From Octopus bimaculoides (Eukaryota), in NCBI RefSeq assembly GCF_001194135.2, contig NC_069005.1, positions 20,608,590 through 20,653,345 of the forward strand: a DNA stretch of 44,756 bases. Direction: 5' to 3'. Position numbers and translations under genes: made by a program. The notes beneath the pieces are model-generated. The model was not told where the DNA came from. It did no database searches and was given only the letters and a program-made list of their open reading frames with translations. Numbering within the stretch: position 1 is the stretch's first letter; the number at the start of each line of letters is the position of its first letter. Below, piece by piece: positions 1,722-44,756 of the stretch.

Positions 1722-1806
1722 GTAGGTTTTTAACAGTGCATTAAACTAAATATCTGCTATTCCTTTATTCCTTAATTTCATTCTTCATTTATTTTCTTCC
1801 CAACAG

Positions 1807-23370: not shown

Positions 23371-23481
23371 CTAAAAGTGTGTGAATATATTTATGCAAAT
23401 AGTTGCATCATGGTGGTAGTAGTAGTCATAGCCTTTCAGCACATACACTGTCATGTATGTTCACCTGTATTTTTTATTTTT

Positions 23482-23829: not shown

Positions 23830-25035
23830 TCTCTGTGTTCCTGTTGCTGTGACCCTGGATTGCCTTTGTTGGAATACCTTATTGGAGTACCTGTGGGCTA
23901 GGATTGCCGAGTGGCCGGAATTGTGTTGCTGTGTCTTGAACTGTCTTCCTTCCTTCCTTTTCTCTGCTCTGTCTTTCTGTTCTTGTATTTATTTATCTAT
24001 TACTGTGAACCCTTTTTGTTGAACTTTTCGTTGGATTTTTGTGGAACATTTTGAACTTTTGTTTAAGGCATGGCAAAAAAGAATAACACTGTCTTGGAGT
24101 GGGAACTGTGCCCACCCAAGCAGTGGTTGAAAGAAATGGAGAAGAGGACAGTGGTCATGCGGACCTATTGTAGGTCACACAATGCCATTTCCCTCTTCAA
24201 CAAAGAGGTTATTGAAAGAGAGTTGGCAATTTGTTTGCCAGCAAAGAAATTTTTCATCTCCAGGGGGGTCAAGTACGCAACGGTGTGGTTGTTGTTCGAC
24301 TCCCCTGAGGAAGCTGCCAATGCGGCCAGCCAGACTCTGCAGGGGTAGGAAATTTTGTTCCTCCCCTCTTACTGTGGAAGGAGAACAATTAGAGCCTGGG
24401 TTCATGGACTACCCCCAGGTGCCAAGGCCAAGTGGATCGCTGATATCATCCGGCAGGGCTTGGGAGACAGTGGACCCAGGCTCCTTAATGTGCACATGTC
24501 ACCTGCAGTCAACTGGCAGGGCGCCAAGGCGACATTGACCTTGTGGTCCCCAGTGGCTGTAGGAGACGTGCTTTCCTGATTTTTTTAAGATGACCGGGGC
24601 CAGGTATCCGGCTATTATTGAGGGTCGGCAACCGAGGTGCCATATGTGCCTAGAAGCTGGCCACATTAAGAAGAACTGTTCCCAGGGCCGTAATAAAGAC
24701 CTGGAGCAGGAAAAAGTGCCCCCCCCCTTCACTAAAAGAAAAAGGAGAGGTGAGCAACCTTTGTTGCTCACCAGTTGAAACAGAGGTTGAGGGGGAGGTG
24801 AAGATCCCCTCGGGTGTGCCGAGGAGGCCCTAACCCCCGAAACCTCTAAAAAGAAAAGGAGAAGGAAGAGAAGTGGGAAGCGGCCGGCGGACGTTTATGT
24901 GCCGCAGACCGAACCAGTGACCCCTCCGGAAGGAAATGTGCCATCGGAGAGGGAGACCCTGTCAGCGGGAATTGTGCCGCTGGCAGGACAAGGTGAGATC
25001 CCCCCTGCTCTGAGGAGGAGGAAGAGTGTGTCCTC
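23830..25035 (+). mobile_element. Tx1/L1-like LINE 5' UTR and disrupted ORF1 (RRM-like region plus CCHC knuckle)
   Basis: ORF pieces 24070-24348, 24355-24579, 24590-24778 join into one protein with VWLLFDSPEEA (RRM-like) and EGRQPRCHMCLEAGHIKKNC (CX2CX4HX4C), then a basic Pro-rich tail. Confidence 0.7.
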
Positions 25036-25172
25036 CTGTACCTCAGGGGTGGGGAGGTTGAGAAGCACTTGAACTACGAGTACGTAGATAGATACGTTTC
25101 TGCCTGCGAAAGTAGTTCAAGGTGGCCTCAGCAGTAATAACCAGTAGCACCCGTGCTGGGGTGGCGGCCGCC

Positions 25173-25506
25173 TGTAGTAGCCTCGCATATATGTGCTTCA
25201 GTACTGAGGCTGAATTGAATATGGAAAGCTGCCTGTGTGCGGCGGAAGGCCTGCTTGCAAGGCATATGAACTGAATAGACAACCAGAGAGGAGAAAAATG
25301 ACTTCTAACCACACAACTTCATTGACAGCGTCTCATCTAACCAAAAGGCGACGTGCTACCGAATTCCAACCCAGTGTGAGCAGAATTCTACTGTAATAAA
25401 ATATTTGTTGTGCTGTTAGTTTAGAGTCTGCGTTCCGTTTACTTCCTTAAGAAATTTAATGTACGGAATTGGGATACACCTAATGGTGTATAACCACTTC
25501 CCTACA
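25173..25506 (+). mobile_element. Candidate 5' LTR of an LTR retrotransposon
   Basis: TGTAG...CTACA termini, internal AATAAA near 25395, directly followed by a PBS; left boundary uncertain. Confidence 0.45.
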
Positions 25507-25508
25507 AC

Positions 25509-25520
25509 TGGTGACCCCGA
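25509..25520 (+). promoter_or_regulatory. Primer-binding site, tRNA-Trp type
   Basis: TGGTGACCCCGA, 2 nt after ...TACA, complementary to the recalled 3' end of eukaryotic tRNA-Trp (...UCGGGGUCACCA). Confidence 0.6.
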
Positions 25521-26069
25521 ATCAAGAACAAATGCAGCCCGAAAACTCTGAACTACCAACCACAATACTACACAAGCTGTCGCCTGTCTTACACATGCTT
25601 TCCACAGTAGCCTTAGACCGCGAGACAAGACAAACAACTGAACAGTAATTTCCTGTCCGACTACACGTGCGCTTTTCATGGTTCCTTTTGAATCGCTATA
25701 TTTCACCACAGATGTTGCTTTTGACTTTGTCTAGCAGGACAGCCTCATAAACAAACACAGACTTGCACACATTTAATTTTCTGCCCTGTTTTATTGTGTT
25801 ATATTCCCCTTTTCAGCGCGACAAGGTGGGTGATATTTTGTTCCTGCATACAGTACACAAAAGCAACACACATACACACTAAAAAAAAAAAAAAAAAAGG
25901 CAAGCACAATTGTTTTCTTTACAAATTTTTTTTTTCTCTCTCTCTCTCTTTTGTGCACACCATAACTTACAAAAACAAGAACACGAAAAATATTGTGTTT
26001 TTTCTTTTAGCGGTAAATCTTTTTGGCTCAACATGCGGCGGTCAATCACCACTTGGGCATGCTCTTATT

Positions 26070-26912
26070 TGAAGTGCTAGAGAAACTAGACCAGCACAAC
26101 TATGAGGTACAGCACCGTCCGGGGCAGGTACATGGTAAAGCTGATAGCTTGAGTCGTTGTCCTCGTAAACCAGACCACAAGCACAGTAAGAAATGCAACC
26201 GAACTGCAATGACTGGATATGTGTCAACCAGAGAAGTACAGAAGAGACAGATGGAAGATGCTGACTTAAGGCCAGTGGTAGAGTGGCTGCAGCAGAAAGC
26301 AACGAGACCATCTTGGGAGGAGGTATTCAGGTCCAGCCCTGAAACTAAGAGCTATTGGGGCCAGTGGGACCGTCTTCGTCTGAACAATGGGCTGCTTGAG
26401 AGGCGCTGGAAGACACCCGATGGCTTTAATGAGTATTGGCAGTTGGTGATACCCAAGAAGACGAGACCTGACCTGCTGGAAGAAGCTCATAACCAAATTA
26501 CAAGTGGACATCTAGGGGGTAAAGAAAGCATTGAATCAGCTGCAGCACAGATTCTATTGGAAGGGCATGCATCAGGACGTCCAGGAATGGTGTCAATCTT
26601 GTGATGTATGCTGCGCCAAGAAGGGACCAAGGAAGCAGGGATGTGCCCCTCTGCAGTTATACCAGGTGGGTGTACCCTTGGAAAGGGTAGCTGTGGATAT
26701 TGCTGGACTGTTGCCACTCACGTAAAGAGGAAATAGGAATATATGTGTGGCCATGGACTACTTCACAAAGTGGCCTGAGGCCTATGCCATCCATGATCAG
26801 GAAGATACAACGGTTGCGCAAGTGTTAGTAGATCAGTTCTTCTGCCGGTTTGGAGTGCCTCAGGAGTTGCATTCCGATCAAGGTAGGAACTTTGAATCAG
26901 CTGTGTTCCACG
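26070..26912 (+). mobile_element. Gypsy/Ty3 pol fragment: RNase H end, HHCC zinc domain, integrase core start
   Basis: YEVQHRPGQVHGKADSLSR; HNQITSGHLG...FYWKGMHQDVQEWCQSCDVC; PLERVAVDIAG; MDYFTKWPEAY; FGVPQELHSDQGRNFES; frameshifted. Confidence 0.92.
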
Positions 26913-27150
26913 AGAGTCTTTTTAATCTTTGTACCTGACCATTCTGCTGAAACCCTTCTGCCCCTTATTAAAAAATTTATCAAACCAGGGACAACTGTAT
27001 ATTCTGACTGTTGGAGTGCTTATAATGGGATTAGTGAAGTAGATGTTTTACCCAAAGACACCCATTTCAAGGTGAACCATTCCGAAAACTTTGTTGATCC
27101 AATAACAAGTGTTCACACGAATTCAGTTGAATGTTATTGGAAGAATGCAA
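26913..27150 (+). mobile_element. Merlin (IS1016/IS1595-related) DDE transposase, C-terminal part
   Basis: VPDHSAETLLPLIKKFIKPGTTVYSDCWSAY...VNHSENFVDPITSVHTNSVECYW. Confidence 0.85.
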
Positions 27151-27605
27151 AACGACCAAGGACTACCATCAACACCGACACTACCACCACGGTTTCTGAT
27201 ACTACATCTGCTTCCTCTGCTACCGACATCACCACCACCACCACCACCAAGAACGACAATAACAACAATTCCATTCAACCTTTGCTCCCTTCACCGCCAA
27301 CAACTGAAGGAGAGAAAGGAAAAATTAGAATCATTAAACGAATGGCTGAAATATTTTGAACACAGAAGATTATAAAAACAATTTTCCTTCCCTTTCCCCT
27401 TCACGTAAAAGGGACAAGAATACAAAAAAAAAAAAAGTCATCCAACTACTACAACAGCAGATAAAAGACACAAGAGCTTTGATTAGACGACCAGAACAAG
27501 CCAACACAGACAAAATCGAAAAATGCCTTCGCCCTGTATGGGCACAAAGATTATGTTGCTTGGTAGCTTCAACTCTTCTATCCTATGTTCAGTAACAAGG
27601 ATACC

Positions 27606-27865
27606 AGTTGAATCCTGAACGAGCTGATGTCTACACTTTTGTTTCATCAATGCTTGAAGACAGCAATGATGGCATCATCTTCCTTGATGCGCCTTGTGGC
27701 ACAGGAAAGATATTTCTACTCAACCCCCTCCTTGCCAAAGTTTGTCAACGTGGGTAGAAAGCCATTGCAACAGCATCTTCAGGAATAGCAGCCACGCTGT
27801 TAGACGGCAGCAGAACAGTCCATTCAACATTTAAGCTTCCTCTTAACATTGATCATGTAAAAAAT
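27606..27865 (+). mobile_element. Helitron PIF1 helicase fragment (motifs I/Ia)
   Basis: IIFLDAPCGTGKIFLLN...AIATASSGIAATLLDGSRTVHSTFKLPL. Confidence 0.85.
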
Positions 27866-28249
27866 CCTTCGGTGCACTTTAGGATGAGACACTGAGAGAA
27901 AACCACTGTAACTTCTCAACAACGTAAATAATAAAAAAAAAAAACAAATTGAATAAAAATAACACACTACCTGTTTTTGTTAACTTCATACATTTTCAAA
28001 TTCAACTTTCAAGAACGCTATCCAAATCGCACGTGGTTGTCAAGGTCTAGAATTCTTGACCGTTGGAATCATGGCCAAATTTGGGCATGCGCAAATAAAA
28101 AAAAAACAAAAAAACATTTCCAAGGATTGGCTTAAGAAATCTTTCTACAGAAAATCTGGTGCTAAGCAGTTCGCTTAACAATCGTTTCGATAGAGAGCCT
28201 TGTGCTAAAAAGTTTACTAGGATTTGTTGACATTGGTAATTTATTGTAA

Positions 28250-28582
28250 ACATGATTTATGACATATTGCCTTACATTCAAGATTTTGATGCAGCTTATT
28301 CATTTCTAGAAATGAAGAAAGTTCTCAATTGTGTAAGTCTCCGATGTTCACATTGCCAGAAAGAAGATATTTCGTTGCCCAACACACAAAGCAGAAAAAC
28401 AGTCTATTAAAAAGTCTTCCTCCTATCTGGAAAATTCCAAAATAAACCTGCAGGACTTTATTCTTGTTACATATTTATGGTCCCATAACACATCTGTATA
28501 CACATCATCCGAGATGACTGGCCTATCACATACTACTGTTATTCAATGACATCAATATAGGAGGGATATTTTGTGCAACCCC
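28250..28582 (+). mobile_element. Merlin transposase, N-terminal part
   Basis: LRCSHCQK...KKSSSYLENSKINLQDFILVTYLWSH...EMTGLSHTTVIQ*HQYRRDILC, matching the Merlin N-terminal zinc-ribbon/HTH layout; ends at a 100-N gap. Confidence 0.55.
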
Positions 28583-28702
28583 NNNNNNNNNNNNNNNNNN
28601 NNNNNNNNNNNNNNNNNNNNNNNNNNNNNNNNNNNNNNNNNNNNNNNNNNNNNNNNNNNNNNNNNNNNNNNNNNNNNNNNNNTCTCTCAAATACCGTGCA
28701 CT

Positions 28703-29334
28703 ATGGACACCAGCAGACGAAGCTTTATACAGCACCAAATTGAAGCTAATAAGAAGATGCACTGAAACTGGTAATTAGAAGAAATTCGCCTTCTTGCACA
28801 AGCATGGAGCTTGGCCAAAGGATCACCAGCAAATGACCTAATAGCTGAAACCTTGGNNNNNNNNNNTCATAAACACACACAACCCTGGAGTTACCAACAT
28901 GTTTCAAATTATACAAACTTACCAATAGTCCTACAAATGCCAAAAATGGAAAACCTATTAAACACTACATCAGAAACAGTAAATGCCAAGATAACCTAAG
29001 ATAACCGCTCTCTCAAATACCGTGCACTATGGACACCAGCAGACGAAGCTTTATACANNNNNNNNNNNNNNNNNNNNNNNNNNNNNNNNNNNNNNNNNNN
29101 NNNNNNNNNNNNNNNNNNNNNNNNNNNNNNNNNNNNNNNNNNNNNNNNNNNNNNNNNGCAAATGACCTAATAGCTGAAACCTTGGATAGATATAATTTCT
29201 ACAGATCAATGGCTCAAATTGAACGGAAGAAACAGGAGCTCATATGCTCCTATGATCTTATAAAACCGCATCTTGACCTCCTAGAAGGCATTAAAAAGGA
29301 CAATGAAGACTACTTACAAAGGATTCAATTATAA
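28703..29334 (+). pseudogene. Small ORF upstream of NS1-like gene, about 100 aa, two internal stops, function unknown
   Basis: After collapsing the repeats around gaps: MDTSRRSFIQHQIEANKKMH*NW*LEEIRLLAQAWSLAKGSPANDLIAETLDRYNFYRSMAQIERKKQEL...YLQRIQL*. Confidence 0.45.
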
Positions 29335-29565
29335 TCAGTTCTGTGCCACACCACCTGGCAGGCACTTAAACAGCTTACCGCCTAAAGGGAAAAGGCACGG
29401 TAGAACAACATACATAAATGCCAATGCAAGCGGAAATAACGCACTTAAACATCTGTCAGGCCACTTTGTTAACAAGTAAATTGACAAGCGCTGTCGATAT
29501 CACAGCCCTGGCGTATCATACATATAAATAAGACCTCGACAAGTGAAATCCCACAGACGCCAGCC

Positions 29566-31246
29566 ATGGAGATACCACTCAACATCGCAGCTACCAACGA
29601 TAAAGGAACTTTCGACGCAACAGTCAAAGGAGAGAAACTACAACCGTACACATGGGTTTACCGAATACAGTCAGAAAAAGAGTTCACCTGGGAAGAATCA
29701 CCATTCATAAGGTCAGCGTTAAACACATTTAAACATCAATCAAACTACTTTCTCAATCTGCTATCCAAGCATCCCAGCATCACAAAAAATCGTTATCGAG
29801 CATTAAACANNNNNNNNNNCTATCCAAGCATCCCAGCATCACAAAAAATCGTTATCGAGCATTAAACATTGTTACGACCAACCACATTTTCATATTATTT
29901 CTTGGCATAAAGATCACCCGACAAACCTACACAGCNNNNNNNNNNTTTTCATATTATTTCTTGGCATAAAGATCACCCGACAAACCTACACAGCTTCACC
30001 ATGCTTAAAACATATTAAAAAATAATATAGAAAAGCCATACAACATGGCTGCAACGAAAGTATTCACGCCTCAAGGCTTTGCTAATTACCTTAACCAAGA
30101 TAACTCCATCAGATGGGTAGTAAGCGCTGATAACATCACCACGGAGGGACAGAAATTAATGCTCAAGGAACTAACGGACAAAGATATTCAAAACACAGAA
30201 TCAGGATCAGAATCCGACGAAGGAAAAGTGTTGAACACACGCACAGTTCGCGGGCAGAAGTATGATTTCATTAAGAAAATCATGAAGAAATACTGCAGCA
30301 CAGACCTCGGTGATATTATTAAGTATTGCAAAACAAGCAATAAACATCACCAGAAACAAAAATGGATAAACATTTACTGAAAAACACCAAACTTCACTGC
30401 CCTCATCCAATCAGCAGCTCCGGACACCAACATCGAAGCACTGACTACACCCATATGGGAACAAATCAGACATAAAAAATCATACTTCACACAGAACGCA
30501 AACAATTACCACGATGTTCAAACCTCCCTGGACATTTACGACGAGTGGTTACAACGTCACAACATCGATGCAGACACTTTCAGCAGACAAACTTTTGAAA
30601 TTTGTCATAAAATCAACCCCAAGGTTAACGGACTACACACCACAGGCGTCTCCAACTCTGGAAAGAGTTACATTCTGAGAAGCATCAGGAACGGACTCGT
30701 GAATTGCAGACGTATGAGATGTCAGGCTTCAGACAACTTTACATTTGGATCTTGCGTGGATAAAACGCTGATATACACCGATGAAATGTGGTTTGCCACA
30801 AACAACGTCGAGGAGGCTAAATGTATATTTGAGGGCACTGATACTTATATTAACATAAAACATAGCCCAGAACGTATTCTGAAACGCACACCTTGCTTAT
30901 CAACATCCAATCAGGAACCATGGAGAGTGGTAATGCAGGAAGAAAGCGCATTGAAGAACAGACTATTCCTCTACGAAACAAGCAAAGACATGCTACAACT
31001 AACAGACTGGGGAAAAGTCGAGTTAAATCCACTTATGTGGTTAACCATTTGGAAGTCATACATTGACAAATTCGTAGATAATACCTACAGTGAAATCTAC
31101 NNNNNNNNNNGAAGTCATACATTGACAAATTCGTAGATAATACCTACAGTGAAATCTACATAGAAGAAAACAAACCGAAAACTTCAACAAGATACAACTT
31201 GTGTCAGACTTCGACCACTTGTCACCAACCAAGAAAAGAACCATAA
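29566..31246 (+). pseudogene. NS1: Endogenous parvovirus NS1-like gene (SF3 helicase with putative N-terminal nuclease domain)
   Basis: Walker A GVSNSGKS, Walker B LIYTDE, B' EEAKCIFEGTDTYINIKH, motif C LSTSN, LKNRL. ORF-track pieces 29566, 30045 and 30699 become one frame of about 500 codons with a single TGA (30378-30380) once duplications flanking three 10-N gaps are removed. Confidence 0.85.
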
Positions 31247-31249
31247 ACG

Positions 31250-32018
31250 CTGTGCTCAAACTCAGGAAGGCCAAACCGATGACCGAAACAAGGAAAATGC
31301 CACCAGTGCTATAACCGCTACTGAAAGCTGCAATGGCCATGGTGAATGCAATTAACACAGTACCACACCAAAAGACAGAGACAGGAGAACAGACAAAGTA
31401 GCCAAAGACGAAGAAATGGTGAACACTAACAAGCCTCAAGCCCAAGCATGTTACGCAAAGAAACAGATTATCTGTAAATTCTACCTACATGGTACCTGTT
31501 GGCTCAGGGAAAAGGGAGCAAACTGCAAATTTGTCCATCCCAAACACCACCAGCTAAACAAGCTAGATGACCNNNNNNNNNNCCACAACAAAATAAGCCA
31601 GAGTGCAGAAAAAAAAGAGACCAAAAAACTTGAACCTGCATACCTATAATCCACCAAGAACCAACAGGACTCACAAGGAAAGAAGTCCACATNNNNNNNN
31701 NNCTATAATCCACCAAGAACCAACAGGACTCACAAGGAAAGAAGTCCACATATTTCTTCTGCTCCTAACAAAAGGCTATATGCAGAGGCTGTGCAAACTG
31801 CAGCAGCTGAACTACAAGCTTTTTTAAGCATGGCTCAGAACATAGTGCATCAACTCACATGGATACAGAGTCAACACCATACAAACCACTATCCAAGACC
31901 ACCACAGGCGATGGATGCAGGATGGCTGCCACTAACACCAGGGACCCCTGCACAGGTATCACACCTGTTTTGTGAATTCTCCCCATATATCACATGCTCA
32001 CGTGGTCGCACCAGTTGA
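31250..32018 (+). other. Disrupted ORF with a CCCH zinc finger, LINE-ORF1-like
   Basis: ICKFYLHGTCWLREKGANCKFVHP (C-x7-C-x8-C-x3-H), followed across gaps by ...KRLYAEAVQTAAAELQAFLSMAQ... and a Gln/Pro-rich tail. Confidence 0.6.
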
Positions 32019-32269
32019 TCCTGTCTCCTCTCATNNNNNNNNNNNNNNNNNNNNNNNNNNNNNNNNNNNNNNNNNNNNNNNNNNNNNNNNNNNNNNNNNN
32101 NNNNNNNNNNNNNNNNNNNNNNNNNNNNNNNNNNACTTTCTACCTTTCTACACTTTACGGATTCTCTTTTGGACTTTCTACACTTCAGCTGCACCTCTCC
32201 TGCCTGTGGATTATAATATATATATGTGCATATATATATATTATATTTTTCACTTAGAGTGAGAAATTT

Positions 32270-34660
32270 ACCCAGGATGTTTTTAAGGTTCTGGACAGGT
32301 AGGTTATGATACACACACGGCTAGAAAGGCCGGCTTTTTGCTCTCACCTGATGTATCAAACCCCAGTAATGGGAGGAGTGGAAGAATGGATGTGGGAAAC
32401 TTAACAAGGACTGTTGGTGGTGGAAATAAGTTTTAGGGGTGGCCCTGAAAAATCCTGTAATTGTAGAAACTCTCAATTGTGTCCTCTTGACAGGTTCTGT
32501 CTGAGTACCAATGTAGTATATAAATGCGTTGTTAAGGATGAGGAATTTAAATAAGGTTTAAATAGGCAGTACGGTGAATTTTAAAGCCAGATATAGGGTC
32601 CACATGAGCTCTTTTCCAAATGAAAAATATTGCAGCTCTACAACACTCGCATCTCATTTATACAACCTTAAGAAGAATAATAAGAGGTATTTCTCTGGAA
32701 TGGTCGATTACATCGAGAGCCCCTTACTTCAGAGTAAATATTAGTGTTTATTGTGTGTTAGGGAATCCCTTGCTATACCTAGGTCCTTTGGGCCGAAAAC
32801 CTTAAATAGATTTACTGAAGTGATCCCCTTCTGTAATCATAGGTTTTCACCCACCTTTTTGAAAATATATAGGAATAAAAATAAGAATAAATGTTAGCGT
32901 TAGGGGGATTTGAAACCTGCAAGGTTATATTAGTTACTACAGCCACTTTGAATGTTTAACAAGGTTCTTTTTTTCTTTTTTTTCCATTCGTGATGTGGAA
33001 TCGTCTGCAGATGTGTTCCCTCTAGGATATATAAGCTTTGTTAAAAGACATAATTCTTTTCATGAGTCTTGATGTGAATGTAATGTTATCCCGATGAAGG
33101 GGTCATTGCCGGATTGCACCTTGGTGTAATTGAACTACGGTGGTGAACTCCTGAAATGGCCATAGATACTTGTGCGTGTTGTTTTTGACTGGTGTATTTA
33201 TATGAACTTTTGAAAGTTTTTGTGAGGAGAAACAACTTTTTTCACGATGTACTTGGATTTTACCTGTGGAAGTCTGCTTTATTATGAACTTGTACCTGTT
33301 GAGGGAAGTAAAAGACCATTTCAAATATATTATATCTTTTTAAATGATTTTAAATTATTTAAAAAGTATTTTAATCGTCAGATAAAATCTTTTAGTCGGT
33401 GGACAATTATTTTATCTTCAAATTATTTATATTTGTCTAGTAGGATTGGTATTTTGAATTTTTAGTTGCTTTTTTTTTAAAACTCCATTGTGTACAACAT
33501 TGCTGAAGAAAGTGTATACATTTAGATATAATATAATATAATAGACCCTCAAAATGAATACTGCTGGTAAAATGGAGTTGATAAAGATGGACTCATCACT
33601 TAAAGACATACCTATCCCACATATGTTAAGGAACTAATCTTAAGAATAAATGAATTCATTCATAGAATACGCTGGAGGATACATCATCAGGATAAGAAGA
33701 CTTCCCAGTTGGGCCCAGAAACTCTGAACGATCACCACATCACCAGAAATAATAACAATGAAATACGAGAACTCACTAAACATATATTCAAATCCAGAAA
33801 AGCACCACCAGCCAACAAGCACTTGGATGATTTCGAACAGGAACTGTAGAACATAGTGAAAAACATCAAGTTCAAGAACCACCCCCTCAGGCATAATCCT
33901 TACCAAAGAAAGTTGAAAGAACTGATAAGAACACTGGATACCCAAAATGGTATTCTAACACATTCTGACAAAACAGGGAACTTGTATAATATTGAAACAG
34001 ACACATATCATGAACTGATATATAGGGAAATAATGAAAAAATATAAGGTTGTACCTAACACCACTCTAAGAAAGTTAAACTTGGAAGCCAGAAATATTAT
34101 GCTGGATTTCAATATAGGCGATAAAACTGAACCATTTACTCCTATCAGACCACGTATAACTATTAAAGATCACAAAGAGAACTTCACCCACAAAACACAG
34201 GTCAGACTAATTTGTCCCAACAAATCTGACTTAGGAAAACTTAGTAAAGTAATACTGGATAAGTACCTACCAACAATTAGGAATAGGGTAAAACTTGACT
34301 TATGGAAAAACACCCAAGGAGCATTGAATTGGTTCTCCAAAATACAGATAGGGAATAGGACCTTAGACTAATCCAAATTGATATTCAAAACTACTATGCA
34401 TCTATAAACCCAGTAGTCCTAAATAGCGCCCTCATTTTCGCCAGATGGCACACTAACCTTAGTATGAGGGAAATATAGGTAATACTCACTGCCCGGAAGA
34501 CTGTTGTAGAATTTGATAACAAGCTATGGGCACGAAAGGACACACCAACCTCTTTGATATTACAATGGGGTCGCCGGAAACTACTGACCTAGTAGGCCTT
34601 TATATACTGGACAATATAGGTAGGGAATTCCCTGGCGGTCTATATAGAGACGACACACTA
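32270..34660 (+). mobile_element. Penelope-like element in partial-tandem layout: GIY-YIG 3' fragment, pLTR with hammerhead, then ORF start and RT
   Basis: CRNSQLCPLDRFCLSTNVVYKCVV...HMSSF...TTLASHLYNLK (32460-32760); ORF restart SLKDIPIP...RINEFIHRIRWR (about 33590); SDKTGNLY, PRITIKDHKENF...VRLICPNKSDLG; GLYRDD at about 34640. Confidence 0.85.
33087..33168 (+). ncRNA. Type-I hammerhead motif with mutated core (CCGAUGA) in the Penelope pLTR
   Basis: TATC-CCGATGA-AGGGGT...ACTCCT-GAAA-TGGCCA-UA-GATA; helices I, II and palindromic III present. Confidence 0.65.
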
Positions 34661-35208
34661 TTTGAGCTGGGAACATCGAAAGCATTAGGAGTATCTTTGC
34701 GAATCCAAATCTTATCATTAAAAGAAATAAACGACTTCCTAGCAGCTAACACTACTTCTATTTCATCCCTAGTAAGCCCTGCCTTATTATGAAAGAACCA
34801 AAGAGCCTTATTTAGTACGATAGGGTTAATAGAAGCATAAAAATTAGAAATATCATACTATATAAACTTAGCATTACATTTGTTCTCAATAGAACGAAAC
34901 CACTCAATAACCTGATTAATACTAGACCATAAATTCAATTGTAATCTATCAATTATAATAGGAATATACCTATCCAAAATACTTTTAATAATTATCCCAA
35001 TGTCAGATTTAGCCGGGCAAATAAGCTTCAAAGATGGCTGAGTCCAAAAATTAATTTTATGATCTTTAAGAAGAAACCACGGTTCCTTAGGCACTATAGG
35101 TTCAGTTCTGTCCACAACAGCATACTTTTCCATTATTTTCTTCACTTCCAAATTAGTCTTTCTGAGTGTCCTTCCATTAGTAATTTTATAATTTTTATCA
35201 ATCTCCAT
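34661..35208 (-). mobile_element. Penelope RT fragment, reverse orientation
   Basis: PWFLLKDHKINF...LKLICPAKSDIG...KFI*YDISNFYASINP...KALWFFHNKAGLTRDEI. Confidence 0.85.
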
Positions 35209-35395
35209 TGAACGAGCTGCTGAGACTGAAGAGCAACGAACCCTTCGTCAAGCAAATAATGTTTCTTCCACTGCTGTCACTAGAGCTTCTGAAGATGATG
35301 AACATCGAGCCCTTCGCCTTGCCGCTCAGGCTTCTTCAACTGCTGCCGCAAGAGCGTTTGAGCTCCTGGAGGTGAGACAAGACCGCCTGAACACC
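35209..35395 (+). mobile_element. Helitron Rep N-terminal repeat region fragment
   Basis: RAAETEEQRTLRQA...RASEDDEHRALRLAAQ...RAFELLEVRQDRL, the ETxEQRxxRL-type repeats of Helitron N-termini. Confidence 0.55.
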
Positions 35396-36370
35396 ATATA
35401 TATAGAATAGTTCAAATTAATTAAGGATAAGGAAAATACGAAGTTTATTCAATTTGATATTGCAAATTTTTACCCATCTATTAATCCTATCATACTTAAC
35501 AAAGCATTGTGGTTTGCACATAATAAGGCGGGACTTACGAGGGAGGAGATCAATGTGATATTAGCAGCTAGAAAATCATTTATTAAGTTCAATAATAAAA
35601 TTTGGATTCGCAAAGATACTCCAGATGCCTTTGATGTTCCTATGAGGAGCTCTGATTCAGCACAAATAGTTGACATTGAATGCTCGTATATCCTTAATGA
35701 AATGGCAGATCAATTCCCAAATGTTGGAGGGGGGGGGTCTATACAGGGATGATTTTTGAAGATGATATATCATTAGCTAATTTTTTAGCAGAATTTTTTA
35801 GAGGTAACATTGGACCTACATAATAAAACATAGACCATACCATAAGCCTTCAACTAACCTGAAGTATATCAGTAAGTTTAGTAATCACCCTAGATCAATA
35901 ACGGAAAATTTGGTAAAGAATATATCACCAAAATATAGCCAAAATCCGACTCATGAGCAACGAACCTGAAGGAATTTATCAAATCTATACGAAGCAAACC
36001 AGGTATTCTGGTCTCGGCGGATAAAACTGGAAACTTATATAGAATTGACTACACCACCTACAAAAAACTAATAATGAAAGAACTCAACGGCAAATATAAG
36101 ATAACTTCAAGAAAAACATTATCAGATATCAATTTGAAAATCAAAAAAATTATGATGGAATATGATCTAACTGATAAAATTGAACCACTTACACCTTGAG
36201 AACCTAAAATTAATTTGAAGGACCATAAGAAAAACTTTCAGGAAAACCCTACTGTTAGACTCATTTGCCCAACTAAATCTGATATTGGAAGACTAAGTAA
36301 GCTTATTCTCAATAACATTATACCTTTTATTATTCCTAACCTTGCTCTAAAATTATGGATTAATACGGAT
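35396..36370 (+). mobile_element. Two Penelope RT fragments (RT core/thumb, then a second N-terminal RT piece)
   Basis: KFIQFDIANFYPSINP...FDVPMRSSDSAQIVD; GLYRDD-like; FLEVTLDL; then ADKTGNLY and LKDHKKNFQENPTVRLICPTKSDIG. Confidence 0.8.
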
Positions 36371-36374
36371 GAAG

Positions 36375-36635
36375 GACCAAGTGGTGGGCCGCTGTTCACA
36401 ACGGTGCCCCGCCAATATGAAAGTGATAGGAAAGCTGCTGCAGAGAAGCGCAGGCAGAATAGAAAGAACAATGCTTTGAAGCCCCCGGCACCTGCTACCA
36501 TTCGCTGGTCCCTGCTGCAGCAGATCTTTCCAAGCGCGGATTGGACTTATCAGCCATCTCCACACTCATCGATGATGACTTCCCCACCCACCTCTAGGAT
36601 TATCAGATGGTCCTCGTTCCGACGGATGAACAACA
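36375..36635 (+). mobile_element. RTE-LINE 3' terminus (C-terminal zinc-finger-like end and short tail)
   Basis: YESDRKAAAEKRRQNRK, then shifted-frame CSRSFQARIGLISHLHTHR*; tail atggtcctcgttccgacggatgaacaacaa. Confidence 0.7.
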
Positions 36636-36739
36636 AATCTTTTGTTGGAGATGGGATATTGTTCCTATAGTTTTCCACTGGTATTGTCGCCATTCAAACT
36701 ATAATTTGAATCTAACCTCAATTTGAACACTTCATCACC

Positions 36740-37070
36740 AACACTACCTCTGTCACAGGGTCTAACCAACACACTCTTCACATTCCACACAGTTTCACCT
36801 GCACCTTCTCCAACCTAATTTACTGCATCAAATGCAACCTATGCAACCAACTATACATGGGTCAGACGGGCCGCCGGCTGGCCGACCGTTTCGCCGAACA
36901 CCTAAGGGACGTTCGGACTCCCCCGTCACTTCCACTTGGCCAACCACTCCCCCTCTAACATCTCCGTTTTTGGCCTCGTTCTGCACCATAGATCCACTCC
37001 CTCACGACTCCACCTGGAACAGCGCTATATTTTCAACCTAAGAACAACTTTCCCCTTCATACTCAACACA
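36740..37070 (+). mobile_element. Penelope-like (Neptune-type) GIY-YIG endonuclease fragment
   Basis: HSFTCTFSNLIYCIKCNLCNQLYMGQTGRRLADRFAEHLRDV. Confidence 0.85.
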
Positions 37071-37159
37071 GCCCCCTCCTCCTTGTGACTGTCTCCTTTA
37101 CGACAAAGCAACACTTTTCTTTTTTTTCCACTTTTTTTCATTTTTCATTATTGTTTTTT

Positions 37160-37495
37160 ATATTAACCCCTCCACACGCATACAATTGCACACATGAGCA
37201 TAAACAACACACGTACACAAGAATGCACAACATACACACGCACACACAAGAACATACACAATATACACATACACACACGCACAAAATATACACAGACACA
37301 TATGCACCCAACACTTACAATCCCACACACGCACACACCCCTCCACACACAATGCACATATATACATGCAAATGAATCCACACATTACTCCACACACACA
37401 ACAAACATTAACACATACACGCACACACACAAACACAGACCCGCGCGCACGCACACAAACACAGACCCACGCGCACGCACACAAACTTACCTCCC
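37160..37495. repeat. CA-rich degenerate microsatellite
   Basis: Low-complexity tract. Confidence 0.75.
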
Positions 37496-38646
37496 TCTTG
37501 CACTCTCCTGTCTTAGAAAGAACTTTTGCTCCACCACTTCCCCTTCTGGTCCTTCCACAATGTAACCCCGTGGACATCAGTGGCAATTTTTTTCTTCCTC
37601 CGTTTTCCCCTCCTTTGNNNNNNNNNNNNNNNNNNNNNNNNNNNNNNNNNNNNNNNNNNNNNNNNNNNNNNNNNNNNNNNNNNNNNNNNNNNNNNNNNNN
37701 NNNNNNNNNNNNNNNNNNNNNNNNNNNNNNNNNNNNNNNNNNNNNNNNNNNNNNNNNNNNNNNNNNNNNNNNNNNNNNNNNNNNNNNNNNNNNNNNNNNN
37801 NNNNNNNNNNNNNNNNNNNNNNNNNNNNNNNNNNNNNNNNNNNNNNNNNNNNNNNNNNNNNNNNNNNNNNNNNNNNNNNNNNNNNNNNNNNNNNNNNNNN
37901 NNNNNNNNNNNNNNNNNNNNNNNNNNNNNNNNNNNNNNNNNNNNNNNNNNNNNNNNNNNNNNNNNNNNNNNNNNNNNNNNNNNNNNNNNNNNNNNNNNNN
38001 NNNNNNNNNNNNNNNNNNNNNNNNNNNNNNNNNNNNNNNNNNNNNNNNNNNNNNNNNNNNNNNNNNNNNNNNNNNNNNNNNNNNNNNNNNNNNNNNNNNN
38101 NNNNNNNNNNNNNNNNNNNNNNNNNNNNNNNNNNNNNNNNNNNNNNNNNNNNNNNNNNNNNNNNNNNNNNNNNNNNNNNNNNNNNNNNNNNNNNNNNNNN
38201 NNNNNNNNNNNNNNNNNNNNNATACAGAACTGACACGCACGCACCCGACAAACTTTAACATATAAACAGCTTTCCAAACGCAAAGAATAATGTTCATACC
38301 AGGGATCATGTATGTATGCTGATATTTCTATATACATATATGTATGTAGGTATGTGTGAGGGGATAGATATATGTGTGTATGTCCCCCTCACATGTGGTG
38401 ACAGTGACTGTTGACTATTTTGGTATGTATGTGCAGCTATCTGTGTATGTGCATCTGAGCACACATATGTACTCATGTAGTTATGTTTTTGCACCCATGT
38501 ATATCTGCATATGGTAATGTATACATGTATAGGCATGTATATTGGAGTTTTTATAACTATTTATATGGTTTTATATACTTTTTGTAGGCTTTTTTTTATG
38601 TGCCTAATATTTTTATTTTTTATTTTATATTTGTATTGAATTTTGT

Positions 38647-38786: not shown

Positions 38787-38964
38787 TGTCCCTTCTCCAA
38801 TTGCTAAATGTCCTTTAAATTTAAAATCTTAATATGACATGGTATGTCATAAGTTTCTGTATATTGTGTTTTTTGTGAATTTAGTTATAAAATAAACAGA
38901 TTAATCAACGGAATACAGTGTCTGCATGTTGAGTGCCTCATATTCCCCTCCATTTTCTTATTGC

Positions 38965-38968
38965 TATA

Positions 38969-39009
<41 letters not shown>

Positions 39010-39105
39010 CAGTGTGTGTGTGTGTGTGTATGTATATATATATTATATATATATATACACACATACATGTATATATGTGTATATATATATATGTGTGTGT
39101 GTATA
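38965..39105. repeat. (TA)n/(TG)n compound microsatellite
   Basis: Direct reading. Confidence 0.85.
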
Positions 39106-40117: not shown

Positions 40118-40189
40118 GGTTACTGAAGAGAATTTGCCTAGTAAATTTTTTTTATTTACTAAAAGAATTCGAAACCTATAGGTCTAACC
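40118..40189 (+). ncRNA. Canonical type-I hammerhead ribozyme
   Basis: GGTTA-CUGAAGA-GAATTT...GAATTC-GAAA-CCTATAGG-UC-TAACC; intact core, GUC triplet, predicted cleavage after 40184. Confidence 0.88.
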
Positions 40190-41224
40190 GTTAAAAATAA
40201 GGTAAAAGTTTTTATTTTTTCTTCCCTTTGAAATGTCTTAACTTTGTGGTTTTCGGTCGTTTATGACTGCCTTCTAGCGTGTAGAAATTGCCTATTATAG
40301 GTAATTTCTCTTATATTTTATATTGAATATGTTGTCTATTGACTTTTTTACATGCTAGGCCACTGGTAGTATAACTCTGTATAGTTTTGTACCCTTTTAT
40401 ATATATATATATTTACAGTAATTATATGTNNNNNNNNNNNNNNNNNNNNNNNNNNNNNNNNNNNNNNNNNNNNNNNNNNNNNNNNNNNNNNNNNNNNNNN
40501 NNNNNNNNNNNNNNNNNNNNNNNNNNNNNNNNNNNNNNNNNNNNNNNNNNNNNNNNNNNNNNNNNNNNNNNNNNNNNNNNNNNNNNNNNNNNNNNNNNNN
40601 NNNNNNNNNNNNNNNNNNNNNNNNNNNNNNNNNNNNNNNNNNNNNNNNNNNNNNNNNNNNNNNNNNNNNNNNNNNNNNNNNNNNNNNNNNNNNNNNNNNN
40701 NNNNNNNNNNNNNNNNNNNNNNNNNNNNNNNNNNNNNNNNNNNNNNNNNNNNNNNNNNNNNNNNNNNNNNNNNNNNNNNNNNNNNNNNNNNNNNNNNNNN
40801 NNNNNNNNNNNNNNNNNNNNNNNNNNNNNNNNNNNNNNNNNNNNNNNNNNNNNNNNNNNNNNNNNNNNNNNNNNNNNNNNNNNNNNNNNNNNNNNNNNNN
40901 NNNNNNNNNNNNNNNNNNNNNNNNNNNNNNNNNNNNNNNNNNNNNNNNNNNNNNNNNNNNNNNNNNNNNNNNNNNNNNNNNNNNNNNNNNNNNNNNNNNN
41001 NNNNNNNNNNNNNNNNNNNNNNNNNNNNNNNNNNNNNNNNNNNNNNNNNNNNNNNNNNNNNNNNNNNNNNNNNNNNNNNNNNNNNNNNNNNNNNNNNNNN
41101 NNNNNNNNNNNNNNNNNNNNNNNNNNNNNNNNNNNNNNNNNNNNNNNNNNNNNNNNNNNNNNNNNNNNNNNNNNNNNNNNNNNNNNNNNNNNNNNNNNNN
41201 NNNNNNNNNNNNNNNNNNNNNNNC

Positions 41225-43005
41225 TGCAATGTGCTGTTCAGGTGGAAAAGTGAAATTACCTGCTTTGGAGGATCCCCCACAGCCACTGCAGGAGCTTCTT
41301 CTGGGAACAACTACTGATTCAAGACACTTCCTACGCAACATAAGAAAATATAACTGTGCGTTTCAAATGACCTCTTTCGGTGCAAATATCATCAGAGAGG
41401 ATGGATTCATGCCTAGATTTAAAGTCCAGGGTCAGGTTTACCACAGGATAGGACCTCTTCAACGTGATACCATCCAAGAGCCGCAGTTTCTTCAACTATA
41501 CTTCGTTTGCAGCTACCAAGAACAGCCGGCAAAACGAAAGAACATATCACCTGTGACTAACTTCCAACTGATATTGCGGCTACAGGAAATGCTTCATGAA
41601 ACAAATAGTTATCTTAAGAGTTTCAAGTATGCTTTAGAGATAGCGTCAGGCCCCAATTTCAATGTTGTCATAGATGCTGATAAACGTCCATTTGGTGAGC
41701 ATGCAGGCCGGTATAATCAACCATCTTGTAATGAAGTCGTCATTGTTCTTCAAGGTGAACCCTCTAATCCAAGGGATATTGTTTTGTCATGCCGCGATAA
41801 CAGCATCCAACGAATACACGAATCTCATAGGGCATACGATGCGCTCCAGTACCCCTTGCTATTCGTTTACGGTGAGGATGGGTACCATTTCGGTATTCCT
41901 CNNNNNNNNNNNNNNNNNNNNNNNNNNNNNNNNNNNNNNNNNNNNNNNNNNNNNNNNNNNNNNNNNNNNNNNNNNNNNNNNNNNNNNNNNNNNNNNNNNN
42001 NNNNNNNNNNNNNNNNNNNNNNNNNNNNNNNNNNNNNNNNNNNNNNNNNNNNNNNNNNNNNNNNNNNNNNNNNNNNNNNNNNNNNNNNNNNNNNNNNNNN
42101 NNNNNNNNNNNNNNNNNNNNNNNNNNNNNNNNNNNNNNNNNNNNNNNNNNNNNNNNNNNNNNNNNNNNNNNNNNNNNNNNNNNNNNNNNNNNNNNNNNNN
42201 NNNNNNNNNNNNNNNNNNNNNNNNNNNNNNNNNNNNNNNNNNNNNNNNNNNNNNNNNNNNNNNNNNNNNNNNNNNNNNNNNNNNNNCTTCATTTACCGGG
42301 GGTCCGCGGTATATGCATGAGAGAATGCAAGATGCCATGACGTTTGTACGTCATTTTGGTTGCCCGGATTTATTCATAACCTTTACTTGCAACCCCAAGT
42401 GGATTGAAATTGAAATTGAATTATTAAACGGTCAGAGGCCCACTGACAGGCACGATCTTCTTGCCAGAGTTTTTCTGTTGAAGCTACAGAAACTCATGGA
42501 TTTGATCAAGATAGGACAGATATTCGGAAGTGTTAAATGCGACATGTATACTATCGAGTGGCAAAAAAGGTCTTCCGCATGCCCATATTCTCTTATGGTT
42601 GTCCTCAAAAATCAATTCAAACAATATAGACAGCCTTATATCAGCAGAACATGCCTGATCCAGCGGTAGACCCAGATCTTTTTCATATAGTACACTCAAA
42701 CATGATTCATGGACCTTGTAGGTATGGATTTAACATCCATTCACCATGCTTCAGAGATTCGAAGAGGGTTTCCCAAGAAGTTCCAGCTTCATACTCAGAT
42801 GGGCAATGATAGCTACCCCCTATACAGGCGAAGGAGTCCTGAAGACGGTGGGCTCACGGTTAAGGTAGGGCACCACGAAGTAGACAACAGATGGATCATG
42901 CCATTTTGCCCGCTTCTGTCCAAAGCATTTAACGCTCATATCAACGTAGAGTTTTGCAGTTCAATCAAGTCTATCAAATATGTCTGCAAATATATAAATA
43001 TCTAA
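41225..43005 (+). mobile_element. Helitron Rep (HUH) domain, degenerate and gapped
   Basis: CCSGGKVKLP...NIRKYNCAFQMTSFGA...KVQGQVYHRIG; GGPRYM...PDLFITFTCNPKW (motif 1); YTIEWQKR (motif 2, frameshifted); NAHINVEFCSSIKSIKYVCKYI (motif 3). Hairpin cgggcaacgccggg at about 43079-43092. Confidence 0.92.
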
Positions 43006-43597
43006 GATATTTATACATCAGTACGAGAAGAACGCAATGACATCGGTTTCAAGTATTACTAAAATCAATTAAATTTCTCGGGCAACGCCGGGCTGACCTT
43101 TAAGATCTCTGTATCTATATCTATTTATCGCTTTATCTTCTTCTACATTTAGATTTTTCCTCACCACCCTTCGCCAACCCATCTAAATAGCTTAGATGTA
43201 TCTTACTTGACTATCCAGATTTTCTCTTATTGTTTCTTAGATTACCCGCCCCACCGATTTGACTCCTTTTATGTTTTATTTTAATTTTATTTTTACATGA
43301 ATATCTGTGTATTACTTTTTCTTTTTTTCTCAGGATTTTATATTCCTATTTTATTTTATATTATTATTTCATTTTGTCATTTTATTATATTGTTCTTAAC
43401 CACCAACTTAACACTACACACTGAATCGTGGCAGGGTATGGACGGATTTCGGAGTACCAAGGAAATTATGTGTAAATGGAGAATTCTACGAGGTATAGTA
43501 CAATGCAAAATACCAAAAGGAGCCTCACCTCTTATATCTCACCTTTCTTCCTCCTTTAACGCCGATGTGATATAATTTCTTGGGAGAGAAATACTTT

Positions 43598-43664
43598 TGT
43601 GGCTGAAGATAGCTTTGTATTGTCAATTATACACTGATATAAAGCTTGAAACACGTGTACCGCA
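43598..43664 (+). ncRNA. Type-I hammerhead ribozyme motif with U.U at the base of helix II
   Basis: TGTGG-CUGAAGA-T-AGCTTTGTAT...ATATAAAGCT-T-GAAA-CACGTG-UA-CCGCA; predicted cleavage after 43659. Confidence 0.75.
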
Positions 43665-44332
43665 GAATCCTTTGTGTTTTTGTTTTTATTTTTTGCATTT
43701 ACAATTCATATATATATACATGTAGGAATCTGGTAGGCGTGAAGTGGATTCGATCCACTATACCCAAATTTGAATAGCTAGGCCGAAGCGGTGTCTCCAC
43801 CACTTGACCCCTTTCTGACCTCTTCTACTCCATCTAGAATAGAGATAAACAAGACCGCCAGCTAAATCCTTTGCACTCACTACCCTTCTCCATAGCTATA
43901 AAAACAAGAGACCTCCAAGCAAACTTCCTCTTTCTTTAGTCACCAGTGGTCACTTGATGACTCATGGAGAACGAAGCCTGTCTGACCAGCTACAACCTTG
44001 CCAGAGGGAGAGAGAAGTTTACAGTCAGCCACTGTGAGACAACGGTGCACACATTATAACTAATAGGAGCTCTCATCCTTTTCTCTATAACCCTACCATC
44101 TCTCTCTCTATGTAATTACTACTATGAAAAAGTGTACATACAGATACAGGCTAAAATTCTTAACCTTGTGTGCTTTACGTACAAACTGTTATTCTATTAC
44201 ACTGGCCTACCCGTCGTGGTATGGCAACATATAAAGTAACGGTAAATAAACATTTCTATAAAAATGTTGATCATCTCCATCGTTCATCTTATAACCAGTA
44301 CAAGTGGTAAATAATACTTATCATTACAATGG

Positions 44333-44685
44333 GTGACATATCTATACAACACAAAAACGTCAACCGTTACATATATATATATAGAGAATTATATTTATAT
44401 AGGATGTAGTATTAACCTGAAACAGAGAATATATAACCATAAGTCTTCGTTTAGACTTAGACATAAGGCAAATAGTACGACATTGGCAAGTAAAATTTGG
44501 GAGTTAAAAGATAATGGTATTAATTTTAGCCTTAAATGGGAAATTATAAGAAAAGCTCAACCTTATAGAAATAATAGATATGGATGTGAATTATGTTCTA
44601 TGGAAATATATGAAATTTTTAAACTTAGGAACAATCCTAATCTAATCAATAATAGATTAGACCTTAGGGTATCATGTGTTATTTC
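44333..44685 (+). mobile_element. Penelope-like GIY-YIG endonuclease C-terminal fragment
   Basis: YIYIGCSINLKQRIYNHKSSF...STTLASKIWELKD...LKWEII...CELCSMEI; the ORF-track extension to 44749 runs into a SINE tail. Confidence 0.85.
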
Positions 44686-44756
44686 TTTACTACCCACAAG
44701 GGGCTACACACAGAGGGGACAAACAAAGACAGACAAACAAACAGATTAAGTCAATT

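Follow-up and report, generated by a model that had tools for sequence, protein, structure and literature searches.

A co-oriented stretch of transposon debris with a parvoviral NS1 fragment in Octopus bimaculoides, probably an ordinary transposon nest

We analysed a window of 44,756 nt from the Octopus bimaculoides genome and found that the transposon and viral coding remnants between 23.8 and 44.7 kb (here called the region; the part before 23830 is the left half) lie almost exclusively on the + strand. The reading that we favour, at a probability of roughly 0.55, is an ordinary nest of transposon debris in the gene-poor sequence that follows a serine-protease gene, holding an NS1-only parvoviral fragment. 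We established the anatomy of the region, the orientations of its pieces and its gap structure (Table 1), and we infer the cause of the shared + orientation. Elements would have inserted one after another, within or next to older ones, before decaying. The debris would comprise a retroelement ORF1, a Ty3/Gypsy integrase piece, one or two Merlin pieces, two Helitrons, at least four or five Penelope-like copies and one NS1-only parvoviral fragment. Their co-orientation may have arisen without a dedicated function, through same-orientation nesting, Penelope-like tandem and inverted arrays, and chance.

Orientation and identity of the remnants

Using Pfam, we scanned every segment that lies right of 23830, has no stop codon and is 45 aa or longer, each strand separately. 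The 102 segments of the + strand yielded Integrase_H2C2 (twice), rve, DDE_Tnp_IS1595, PIF1 (twice), Parvo_NS1, Helitron_like_N and GIY-YIG (twice), and the 99 segments of the - strand yielded zero transposon or viral families. Segments of 30-44 aa in the same stretch added no further family on either strand. The initial annotation had described the region as strand-biased with a Penelope-like exception, and both points were borne out: every transposon or viral Pfam domain match was on the + strand, and tblastn placed a single coding remnant, Penelope-like piece C, on the - strand. Counted as pieces, the ratio in the region is 11:1 (+:-; two-sided binomial p=0.0063); collapsed to events it is 8:0 (p=0.0078) or 7:0 (p=0.016). 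The bias is real and only modestly beyond chance, these p-values being nominal since the boundaries were picked after looking.

The bias also extends to the left half, the supposed control, where it reaches the mariner pieces; coding remnants of the whole window stand at 13:2 in favour of + (p=0.007). That half had been called mixed in orientation, which is correct for its SINEs (5:3) but not for its coding elements, of which the two mariner pieces are + and the one Helitron is -. The SINE is a tRNA-related family of ~370 bp with 8 copies between 5849 and 23813 (self-blastn), and a B-box-like GGTTCAGTCCC was read on the reverse complement of the copy at 7079-7464. As proposed earlier, the region has none of it: self-blastn found 0 copies right of 23813, and the switch from SINE-rich to SINE-free DNA has p~0.02.

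Table 1. Features of the window, with positions counted from its first nucleotide
Feature	Position	Strand	Basis or remark
Host trypsin-like serine protease, last coding exon	1804..1962	+	Pfam Trypsin E 7.9e-11; GDSGGP motif, normal stop codon
SINE copies	starts 5849, 7079, 10854, 13160, 14887, 16425, 23111, 23465	five -, three +	self-blastn
Last SINE copy	23465..23813	-	left edge of SINE-free stretch
Helitron fragment, helicase part	8790..10009	-	PIF1 E 6.9e-7
Mariner-type transposase remnant	11505..12476	+	HTH families, translation; holds the 167-nt duplication at 12246-12255
Pseudo-gap with 167-nt same-strand duplication	12246-12255		inside mariner remnant of left half
Second mariner transposase remnant	19582..20343	+	Transposase_1 E 1.4e-15
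Retroelement ORF1-like remnant	24067..24775	+	one CCHC knuckle, broken ORF; read by eye
Ty3/Gypsy-type pol fragment	26017..26935	+	Integrase_H2C2 E 8.9e-12, rve E 3.9e-11
Merlin (IS1595-like) DDE transposase fragment	26907..27356	+	DDE_Tnp_IS1595 51.6 bits, E 1.3e-13
Helitron helicase (PIF1) fragment	27596..27892	+	PIF1 E 4.5e-4 and 7.8e-9; one in-frame stop
Possible Merlin N-terminal piece	28337..28546	+	translation by eye; no Pfam family
NS1-only endogenous parvoviral fragment	29327..31100	+	Parvo_NS1 56.9 bits
Pseudo-gap	29810..29819		left 49 nt repeated exactly on right, same strand
Further 49-nt pseudo-gaps	29936-29945, 31101-31110, 31693-31702		exact same-strand repeat of flank
Short ORF, one CCCH zinc finger	31356..31646	+	weak zf-CCCH matches, E 0.001-0.04, all below cut-offs
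Penelope-like piece A, C-terminal GIY-YIG part	32438..32882	+	tblastn; aa ~660-803 of ~800-aa ORF
Penelope-like piece B, broken	33572..34675	+	tblastn E down to 2e-66; aa 1 to ~370, RT YRDD motif
Penelope-like piece C	34645..35211	-	tblastn; region's only minus-strand coding remnant
Penelope-like piece D	35402..35960	+	tblastn; aa ~245-460
Penelope-like piece E	35894..36373	+	tblastn; aa ~100-250
Penelope-like piece F	36716..36955	+	weak GIY-YIG, E 0.0024, below cut-off
CA-rich low-complexity tract	36990..37617		Tandem Repeats Finder, ORF translations; runs into 604-N gap
(TA)n/(TG)n microsatellite	38973..39105		Tandem Repeats Finder
Helitron Rep/N-terminal fragment	41229..43002	+	Helitron_like_N 112 bits
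Penelope-like piece G, GIY-YIG part	44402..44686	+	tblastn; GIY-YIG E 0.003

The ORF1-like remnant matched no Pfam family and has no RT downstream. It had been assigned to Tx1; the only basis for this is a CCHC-knuckle ORF read by eye, and the class is putative. The Gypsy fragment holds the integrase zinc-binding and core domains only; it is truncated at either end, and its frame is interrupted once by a frameshift and once by an in-frame stop. For the putative LTR/PBS self-blastn gave no second LTR copy within the window. Abutting the integrase fragment, with a junction near 26.9 kb, is the Merlin fragment. Two Merlin pieces had been placed on the + strand, and we could confirm this one (51.6 bits), the other being recognized by eye only, with no Pfam family.

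Rep (Helitron_like_N) and PIF1-type helicase fragments identify Helitron sequence in the region. The Rep fragment is truncated at both ends and interrupted by one or more in-frame stops, and a 385-N gap splits it. It is collinear with aa 146-732 of Helraiser (7lcc_A), in the segments 146-387, 496-606 and 657-732, and the size of the gap fits the ~108 aa that are missing relative to Helraiser. The "three Helitron pieces" reported before keep their + orientation and reduce to two elements. Because the helicase fragment comes before the Rep fragment at 41-43 kb, the reverse of their order in the protein, the two belong to separate elements, and a single element split by insertions was rejected. 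PDB searches with two short PIF1 pieces gave no match. Within the left-half Helitron, 9710-10009 aligned to aa 871-948 of 7lcc_A (E 7e-5). Searching for homologues of the protease exon gave no candidate.

Penelope-like pieces were mapped by tblastn with relatives of ~800 aa, including P0054 and P0061. An exhaustive homology search returned 1718 relatives; a word-indexed one, started from a Penelope-like piece, gave only 2 matches. All pieces but one had been said to lie on +, and the mapping agrees, with six on + and one on -. Pieces C and D form a head-to-head inverted pair with 76.7% nt identity (self-blastn, tblastx). The pieces are collinear with the ~800-aa relatives and have the make-up of a Penelope-like element, a single ORF of that size in which a C-terminal GIY-YIG endonuclease follows a telomerase-like RT. 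GIY-YIG is weak in two pieces of the window and present at the C-terminus of relative P0054. Five long relatives gave no Pfam RT family at E<=0.001 and no PDB match (phmmer); their RT is too divergent for these libraries. Since the pieces overlap in ORF coordinates with only 44-65% aa identity, several old copies are clustered in 4.5 kb. An RTE element had also been listed on +, and we found no RVT or Exo_endo_phos match on either strand in segments of at least 30 aa.

Contig structure and the parvoviral fragment

The region contains 12 gaps (2143 N, 10%) rather than 6. At four of its 10-N gaps the neighbouring contigs overlap by 49 nt and were left unmerged; the flanks there are continuous on the same strand, and each such junction carries a spurious 59-nt insert. 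Two small contigs, 28683-28856 and 28867-29057, are in swapped order. With gaps and joins of this kind, the co-orientation might in part be a product of assembly, the region's 13 contigs having been ordered and oriented by a scaffolder that may have mis-joined repeats. However, the bias is seen within single contigs, with four or five + pieces in 12256-28582 and a ratio of 5:1 in 32135-37617. Exact 49-nt overlaps on the same strand link the contigs between 29158 and 31572, NS1 is collinear with its relatives across two pseudo-gaps, as is the Helitron with Helraiser across the 385-N gap, and scaffolding decides the relative orientation of four blocks only. We consider such a contribution of assembly to the bias very improbable.

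The NS1 fragment had been assigned to the + strand, which its Pfam match upheld (Parvo_NS1, E 2e-15, cut-off 20 bits; 46 relatives). It carries an SF3 helicase with a Walker A motif. Even when the three spurious 59-nt inserts at junctions are set aside, its frame is interrupted by at least one in-frame stop and, probably, by two frameshifts. The fragment is collinear with an Acanthosepion pharaonis locus (L001) and with two Logan contigs (L002 and L003); it is 5'-truncated compared with a unit of at least 3.5 kb common to two relatives, and no capsid part adjoins it. A domain above cut-off, a broken frame and flanks of transposon debris together identify it as an endogenous parvoviral element. 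The family is multi-copy and decayed, with 46 protein clusters and a named relative in the Acanthosepion pharaonis genome. We rejected an NS1 frame running through the gap at 31101, which the 49-nt duplication only simulates. The CCCH ORF was rejected as part of the NS1 unit, the homology to L001-L003 ending at about 31.1 kb. We also rejected sub-threshold "miRNA" matches near 39 kb, all of which stem from the microsatellite there.

Possible origins of the shared orientation

In favour of a transposon nest, all pieces are truncated, broken and abutting one another, and the + strand of the region is A-rich (AT skew +0.125), as expected of retroelement sense strands. Nor is the bias peculiar to the region, since the mariner pieces of the left half also lie on +. 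AATAAA counts are symmetric, with 19 on + and 21 on -, and thus give no hint that an unbroken minus-strand transcript has been selected for. Nested insertions in human intergenic DNA have a 2.0-2.6-fold sense bias for several family pairs (PMC2836564). If each event takes the shared orientation with a probability of 0.69, the probability of at least 10 of 11 co-oriented is 0.10, and that of 8 of 8 is 0.05. The human case resembles ours in that elements lie in or next to older ones with a shared orientation, an A-rich sense strand and no gene involved. It differs in that it concerns L1, Alu and ERVL pairs at about 2:1, whereas other families are found here and 11:1 exceeds the average prediction of 2:1.

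Some observations speak against the nest. The bias is nominally significant under plain chance (p=0.006-0.016), and only some junctions in the region are demonstrably nested. Documentation of the sense bias comes from human L1-type target-primed insertion (PMC2836564) and extends neither to Helitron, Merlin, Gypsy and GIY-YIG elements nor to molluscs. The sharp boundary between SINE-rich and SINE-free DNA hints at two different chromatin or transcription domains, which a nest does not need; in the nest reading, SINEs would be missing because the family is located in the gene-proximal left part.

Bias across both halves would also be expected if a host transcription unit on the minus strand enclosed the window, for instance as a long intron or a long non-coding RNA, with the protease gene nested on the opposite strand. 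Selection would then have removed sense autonomous elements, with their polyadenylation and splice signals, leaving antisense survivors on the + strand, and short SINEs would be tolerated both ways. Mammalian introns match this pattern, LINE and LTR elements being mostly antisense and SINEs less constrained (PMC3088655, PMC1794541), as here autonomous elements are co-oriented and SINEs mixed. At 70% antisense retention, the probability of at least 13 of 15 remnants on + is 0.13. But the pattern is known from mammals, an orientation bias in cephalopod introns is undocumented in the literature searched, and an enclosing minus-strand gene is not apparent in the window: we found no minus-strand host exon or domain in either half. 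The left half is also free of strand skew (AT +0.009, GC +0.023). AATAAA is undepleted on the minus strand. We regard a host transcription unit as unlikely.

The initial annotation had suggested a uni-strand piRNA cluster of the flamenco type, in which a long minus-strand precursor starting to the right of the window would give antisense piRNAs against many transposon classes and the parvoviral NS1. The defining property of such a cluster, strand-specific small RNAs of 24-32 nt from a long precursor, is not readable from DNA. Diverse fragmented elements in one orientation, a viral fragment among them, would suit it, and at 85% antisense insertion the probability of at least 11 of 12 pieces co-oriented is 0.44, compared with 0.003 by chance. 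Molluscs express piRNAs from clusters that are enriched in transposons, including Gypsy and DNA elements (PMC6128900). However, in Lymnaea, the only snail for which this was measured, clusters make up 0.27% of the genome, which sets a low prior, and molluscan clusters were reported with young elements (PMC6128900), whereas those of the region are truncated and broken.

The known systems resemble the region in part. Like flamenco and flamenco-like clusters of Drosophila (PMC10643416), it has many fragmented transposons pointing one way in gene-poor DNA adjoining a protein-coding gene. Those loci span 227-1085 kb and have a mapped promoter; their piRNAs are biased 7- to 70-fold to one strand, and their defining feature is an enrichment of antisense, env-bearing Gypsy elements (PMC10643416). 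In contrast, the region is 21 kb long (44 kb at most in view) and holds a single 0.9-kb Gypsy integrase fragment among dominant Penelope-like, Helitron and Merlin debris. Its one-way orientation (11:1, p=0.006) is accompanied by the same bias in the left half, and the precursor direction is putative. Endogenous viral fragments lie in mosquito piRNA clusters and the same is proposed for shrimp (PMC7522710, PMC9357335), and the Aedes viral-element clusters and shrimp clusters of parvoviral (IHHNV) fragments likewise have a non-retroviral viral fragment among transposon fragments of the same orientation. For Aedes, the viral fragments are shown to give antisense piRNAs (PMC7522710); here such piRNAs are hypothetical, and NS1 is one member of a multi-copy decayed family, not a recent capture.

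Four + strand hammerheads had been taken to favour a minus-strand precursor. The hammerhead core consists of conserved CUGAUGA and GAAA boxes around helix II (PMC4209133). We found no Rfam match at the gathering score, E<=1 (window) or E<=10 (32135-37617); CTGATGA occurs zero times on the + strand right of 23830, and CTGANGA...GAAA is absent from the Penelope-like part. Since no hammerhead was found, this argument is void. Taken with the bias of the left half and the symmetric AATAAA, these results make a piRNA cluster a doubtful explanation, to which we give little credence.

Implications for cluster prediction and annotation

Nesting bias, selection in introns and chance all yield co-orientation, and therefore about 10 co-oriented transposon fragments in one hand-picked window are not diagnostic of a piRNA cluster. 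The 10-N gaps with their 59 spurious bases shift apparent reading frames, which matters for the annotation of genes and viral fragments in this short-read assembly. We found no map of cephalopod piRNA clusters in the literature searched. If the piRNA reading were true, the region would be a cephalopod minus-strand cluster whose antisense piRNAs target Penelope-like, Helitron, Merlin and Gypsy elements together with the parvoviral NS1, and the first flamenco-like, virus-fragment-bearing cluster described in cephalopods. Minus-strand small RNAs mapping to it would extend to cephalopods both the uni-strand "trap" model and heritable antiviral memory via viral fragments.

Strand bias of the coding remnants

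All stop-free segments of at least 45 aa right of position 23830 were scanned against Pfam, each strand separately (102 plus-strand and 99 minus-strand segments). The plus strand gave matches to Integrase_H2C2 (two), rve, DDE_Tnp_IS1595, PIF1 (two), Parvo_NS1, Helitron_like_N and GIY-YIG (two), and the minus strand gave three chance-level matches and nothing else. Segments of 30-44 aa on both strands of this region had no Pfam match. We found that 11 tool-verified pieces of the right half (23830-44690) lie on the plus strand and 1 on the minus strand (two-sided binomial, p = 0.0063). Collapsing the pieces to events, with Penelope-like pieces C and D set aside, gave 8:0 (p = 0.0078), and the most conservative collapse gave 7:0 (p = 0.016; both two-sided binomial), all of these p-values being nominal because the region boundaries were picked after inspection; a genome of gigabase scale would be expected to contain many windows with such values by chance.

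The co-orientation described in the initial annotation thus held for pieces verified by Pfam or tblastn, but not for hammerheads and an RTE element, neither of which was found. Rfam returned none of the four plus-strand hammerheads claimed, whether at the gathering score, at E ≤ 1 in the window or at E ≤ 10 in 32135-37617. Using the motif definition of PMC4209133, we found no invariant CUGAUGA box on the plus strand right of 23830, and no CUGANGA...GAAA arrangement within the Penelope-like part. Likewise, no reverse transcriptase or endonuclease domain able to be RTE was detected. For the putative Tx1 ORF1, a single CCHC knuckle was read by eye in an ORF that matches no family; the putative LTR/PBS is present once in the window; and the CCCH ORF gave a weak, sub-threshold match and does not belong to the NS1 unit of related loci. 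A (TA)n/(TG)n microsatellite at 38973-39105 attracted stacked matches below threshold to mir-297, mir-466 and other microRNA families, which are noise.

Next to these results stands a compositional asymmetry, strong at 23830-37617 (AT skew +0.125, GC skew -0.084) and close to zero in the left half. It agrees with A-rich sense strands of the co-oriented elements.

Features located in the window
Feature	Position	Strand	Evidence or remark
Tc1/mariner-type remnants	437-886, 11427-12476, 19582-20343	all +	
Trypsin-like serine protease terminal exon (GDSGGP)	1804-1962	+	ends in stop
Left-half Helitron	8790-10009	-	
Integrase	26017-26935	+	Pfam domain localised
Merlin DDE	26907-27356	+	Pfam domain localised
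Helitron helicase	27596-27892	+	Pfam domain localised
NS1 fragment	29327-31100	+	SF3 helicase, Walker A motif
Penelope-like piece A	32438-32882	+	tblastn
Penelope-like piece B	33572-34675	+	tblastn
Penelope-like piece C	34645-35211	-	tblastn
Penelope-like piece D	35402-35960	+	tblastn
Penelope-like piece E	35894-36373	+	tblastn
Penelope-like piece F	36716-36955	+	weak GIY-YIG match only
Helitron Rep	41229-43002	+	Pfam domain localised
Penelope-like piece G	44402-44686	+	tblastn

The left half had been described as mixed in orientation and rich in SINEs. All eight copies of a tRNA-related repeat of about 370 bp lie within 5849-23813 and none right of 23813, which confirms that this SINE is absent from the right half; the chance of 8/8 falling within the left 56% of ungapped sequence is 0.0095 (0.019 for either end). 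Their strands, judged by a B-box-like motif, are indeed mixed (five minus, three plus). In contrast, the coding remnants of the left half, tallied as two mariner remnants on the plus strand and one Helitron on the minus strand, share the plus bias, so that this bias runs through the whole window (13:2, p = 0.007), beyond the right half, and the initial contrast between the two halves is only partly right. A pyrimidine-rich, acceptor-like stretch precedes the protease exon, and no other host coding sequence was recognised in the window. A well-formed tRNA-Val gene lies among the SINE copies (13868-13943, minus strand; Rfam 66.5 bits; ARAGORN anticodon TAC). A 97-nt inverted repeat of 97% identity (3138-3234 and 3958-4054) encloses about 720 bp within the part of the left half that is richest in GC, and may be a small DNA transposon or hairpin-forming element.

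Assembly junctions

The window contains 14 N runs, 12 of them inside the right half (2143 N, 10% of 20,861 bases), where six had been listed beforehand. Exact same-strand duplicates of 49 nt flank four 10-N gaps in the right half (29810-29819, 29936-29945, 31101-31110 and 31693-31702), and one of 167 nt flanks the left-half gap at 12246-12255. These five runs are no true gaps but places where overlapping de Bruijn contigs (k-1 overlaps) were left unmerged, and the sequence is therefore unbroken over 29158-31572 and 31583-32034. Since each junction adds 59 spurious bases (177 at 12246-12255) and shifts the frame, a reading frame that seems to cross one is an artefact. The last 49 nt of contig 28867-29057 equal the first 49 nt of contig 28683-28856, reflecting either swapped order in the scaffold or a small assembly-graph loop. 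No overlap was found at the 100-N and sized gaps. The pieces beside the 385-N gap align to residues 146-387, 496-606 and 657-732 of Helraiser (7lcc_A), and the gap size fits about 108 missing residues; this collinearity supports order and orientation across the gap. The NS1 fragment is collinear with three related loci over two pseudo-gaps. What depends on scaffolding is only how four blocks (to 28582; 29158-32034; 32135-37617; 41224-44756) are oriented to one another.

Parvoviral and Penelope-like pieces

The NS1 fragment, an endogenous parvoviral remnant, is interrupted by one or more in-frame stops and probably by two frameshifts, with junction artefacts discounted. Its relatives form 46 protein clusters (48-74% identity), nearly all on short contigs, and a single named one comes from Acanthosepion pharaonis, a cuttlefish. 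A collinear coding unit, 3.5 kb or more in length, is common to two relatives that come from different samples (L001, the cuttlefish locus, 3086-6564; contig L002, 319-3694). About 1.5 kb at the upstream end of this unit, with no Pfam domain on record, is missing from the window copy, and no capsid part was seen with that copy. Sequence comparison indicates that the fragment belongs to a multi-copy, decayed family. In L001, short matches to the window's Penelope-like GIY-YIG parts flank NS1 on both sides (2521-2601 and 7398-7514).

An exhaustive search found 1718 relatives of one Penelope-like piece, and nine long relatives were used to map the pieces by tblastn. Because their ORF coordinates overlap and their amino acid identity is 44-65%, pieces B, C, D and E are separate old copies. 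Pieces C and D are paired head to head (76.7% nucleotide identity); Penelope-like elements occur in tandem and inverted arrays (PMC4209133).

Origin of the co-orientation

The initial annotation proposed that the right half is a minus-strand uni-strand piRNA cluster. Public small-RNA libraries exist for Octopus bimaculoides (PMC12479628). Two points favour a cluster: the observed bias exceeds the average prediction of a 2:1 nesting bias, and a viral fragment is among the pieces. However, the hammerhead argument is void, and in Lymnaea piRNA clusters occupy only 0.27% of the genome, reportedly with young elements (PMC6128900). Flamenco-type loci are 227-1085 kb long, and their defining traits are enrichment for antisense Gypsy elements, a promoter and piRNAs with a strand bias of 7- to 70-fold (PMC10643416), whereas the right half holds a single Gypsy piece. 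Roughly weighing prior against likelihood gave about 0.1, and we set the probability of a cluster at 0.12, making it an improbable reading of this sequence.

Co-orientation could also arise from known causes other than piRNA production, namely nesting bias, Penelope-like arrays and survival inside transcription units. Human intergenic nested insertions show a 2.0-2.6-fold sense-orientation bias (PMC2836564); under a sense-nesting model with p = 0.69 per event, the probability of at least 10 of 11 is 0.10. Within transcription units, LINE and LTR survivors are mainly antisense and SINEs less constrained (PMC3088655). Antisense survival inside a minus-strand transcription unit would match the window's pattern of biased autonomous elements and mixed SINEs, but this variant is unproven, because no minus-strand exon was found among the Pfam-scanned segments of either half, the left half has no strand skew, and AATAAA counts are symmetric between strands. 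The right half is most likely an ordinary nest of transposon debris, and the feature belongs to a known, ordinary kind.
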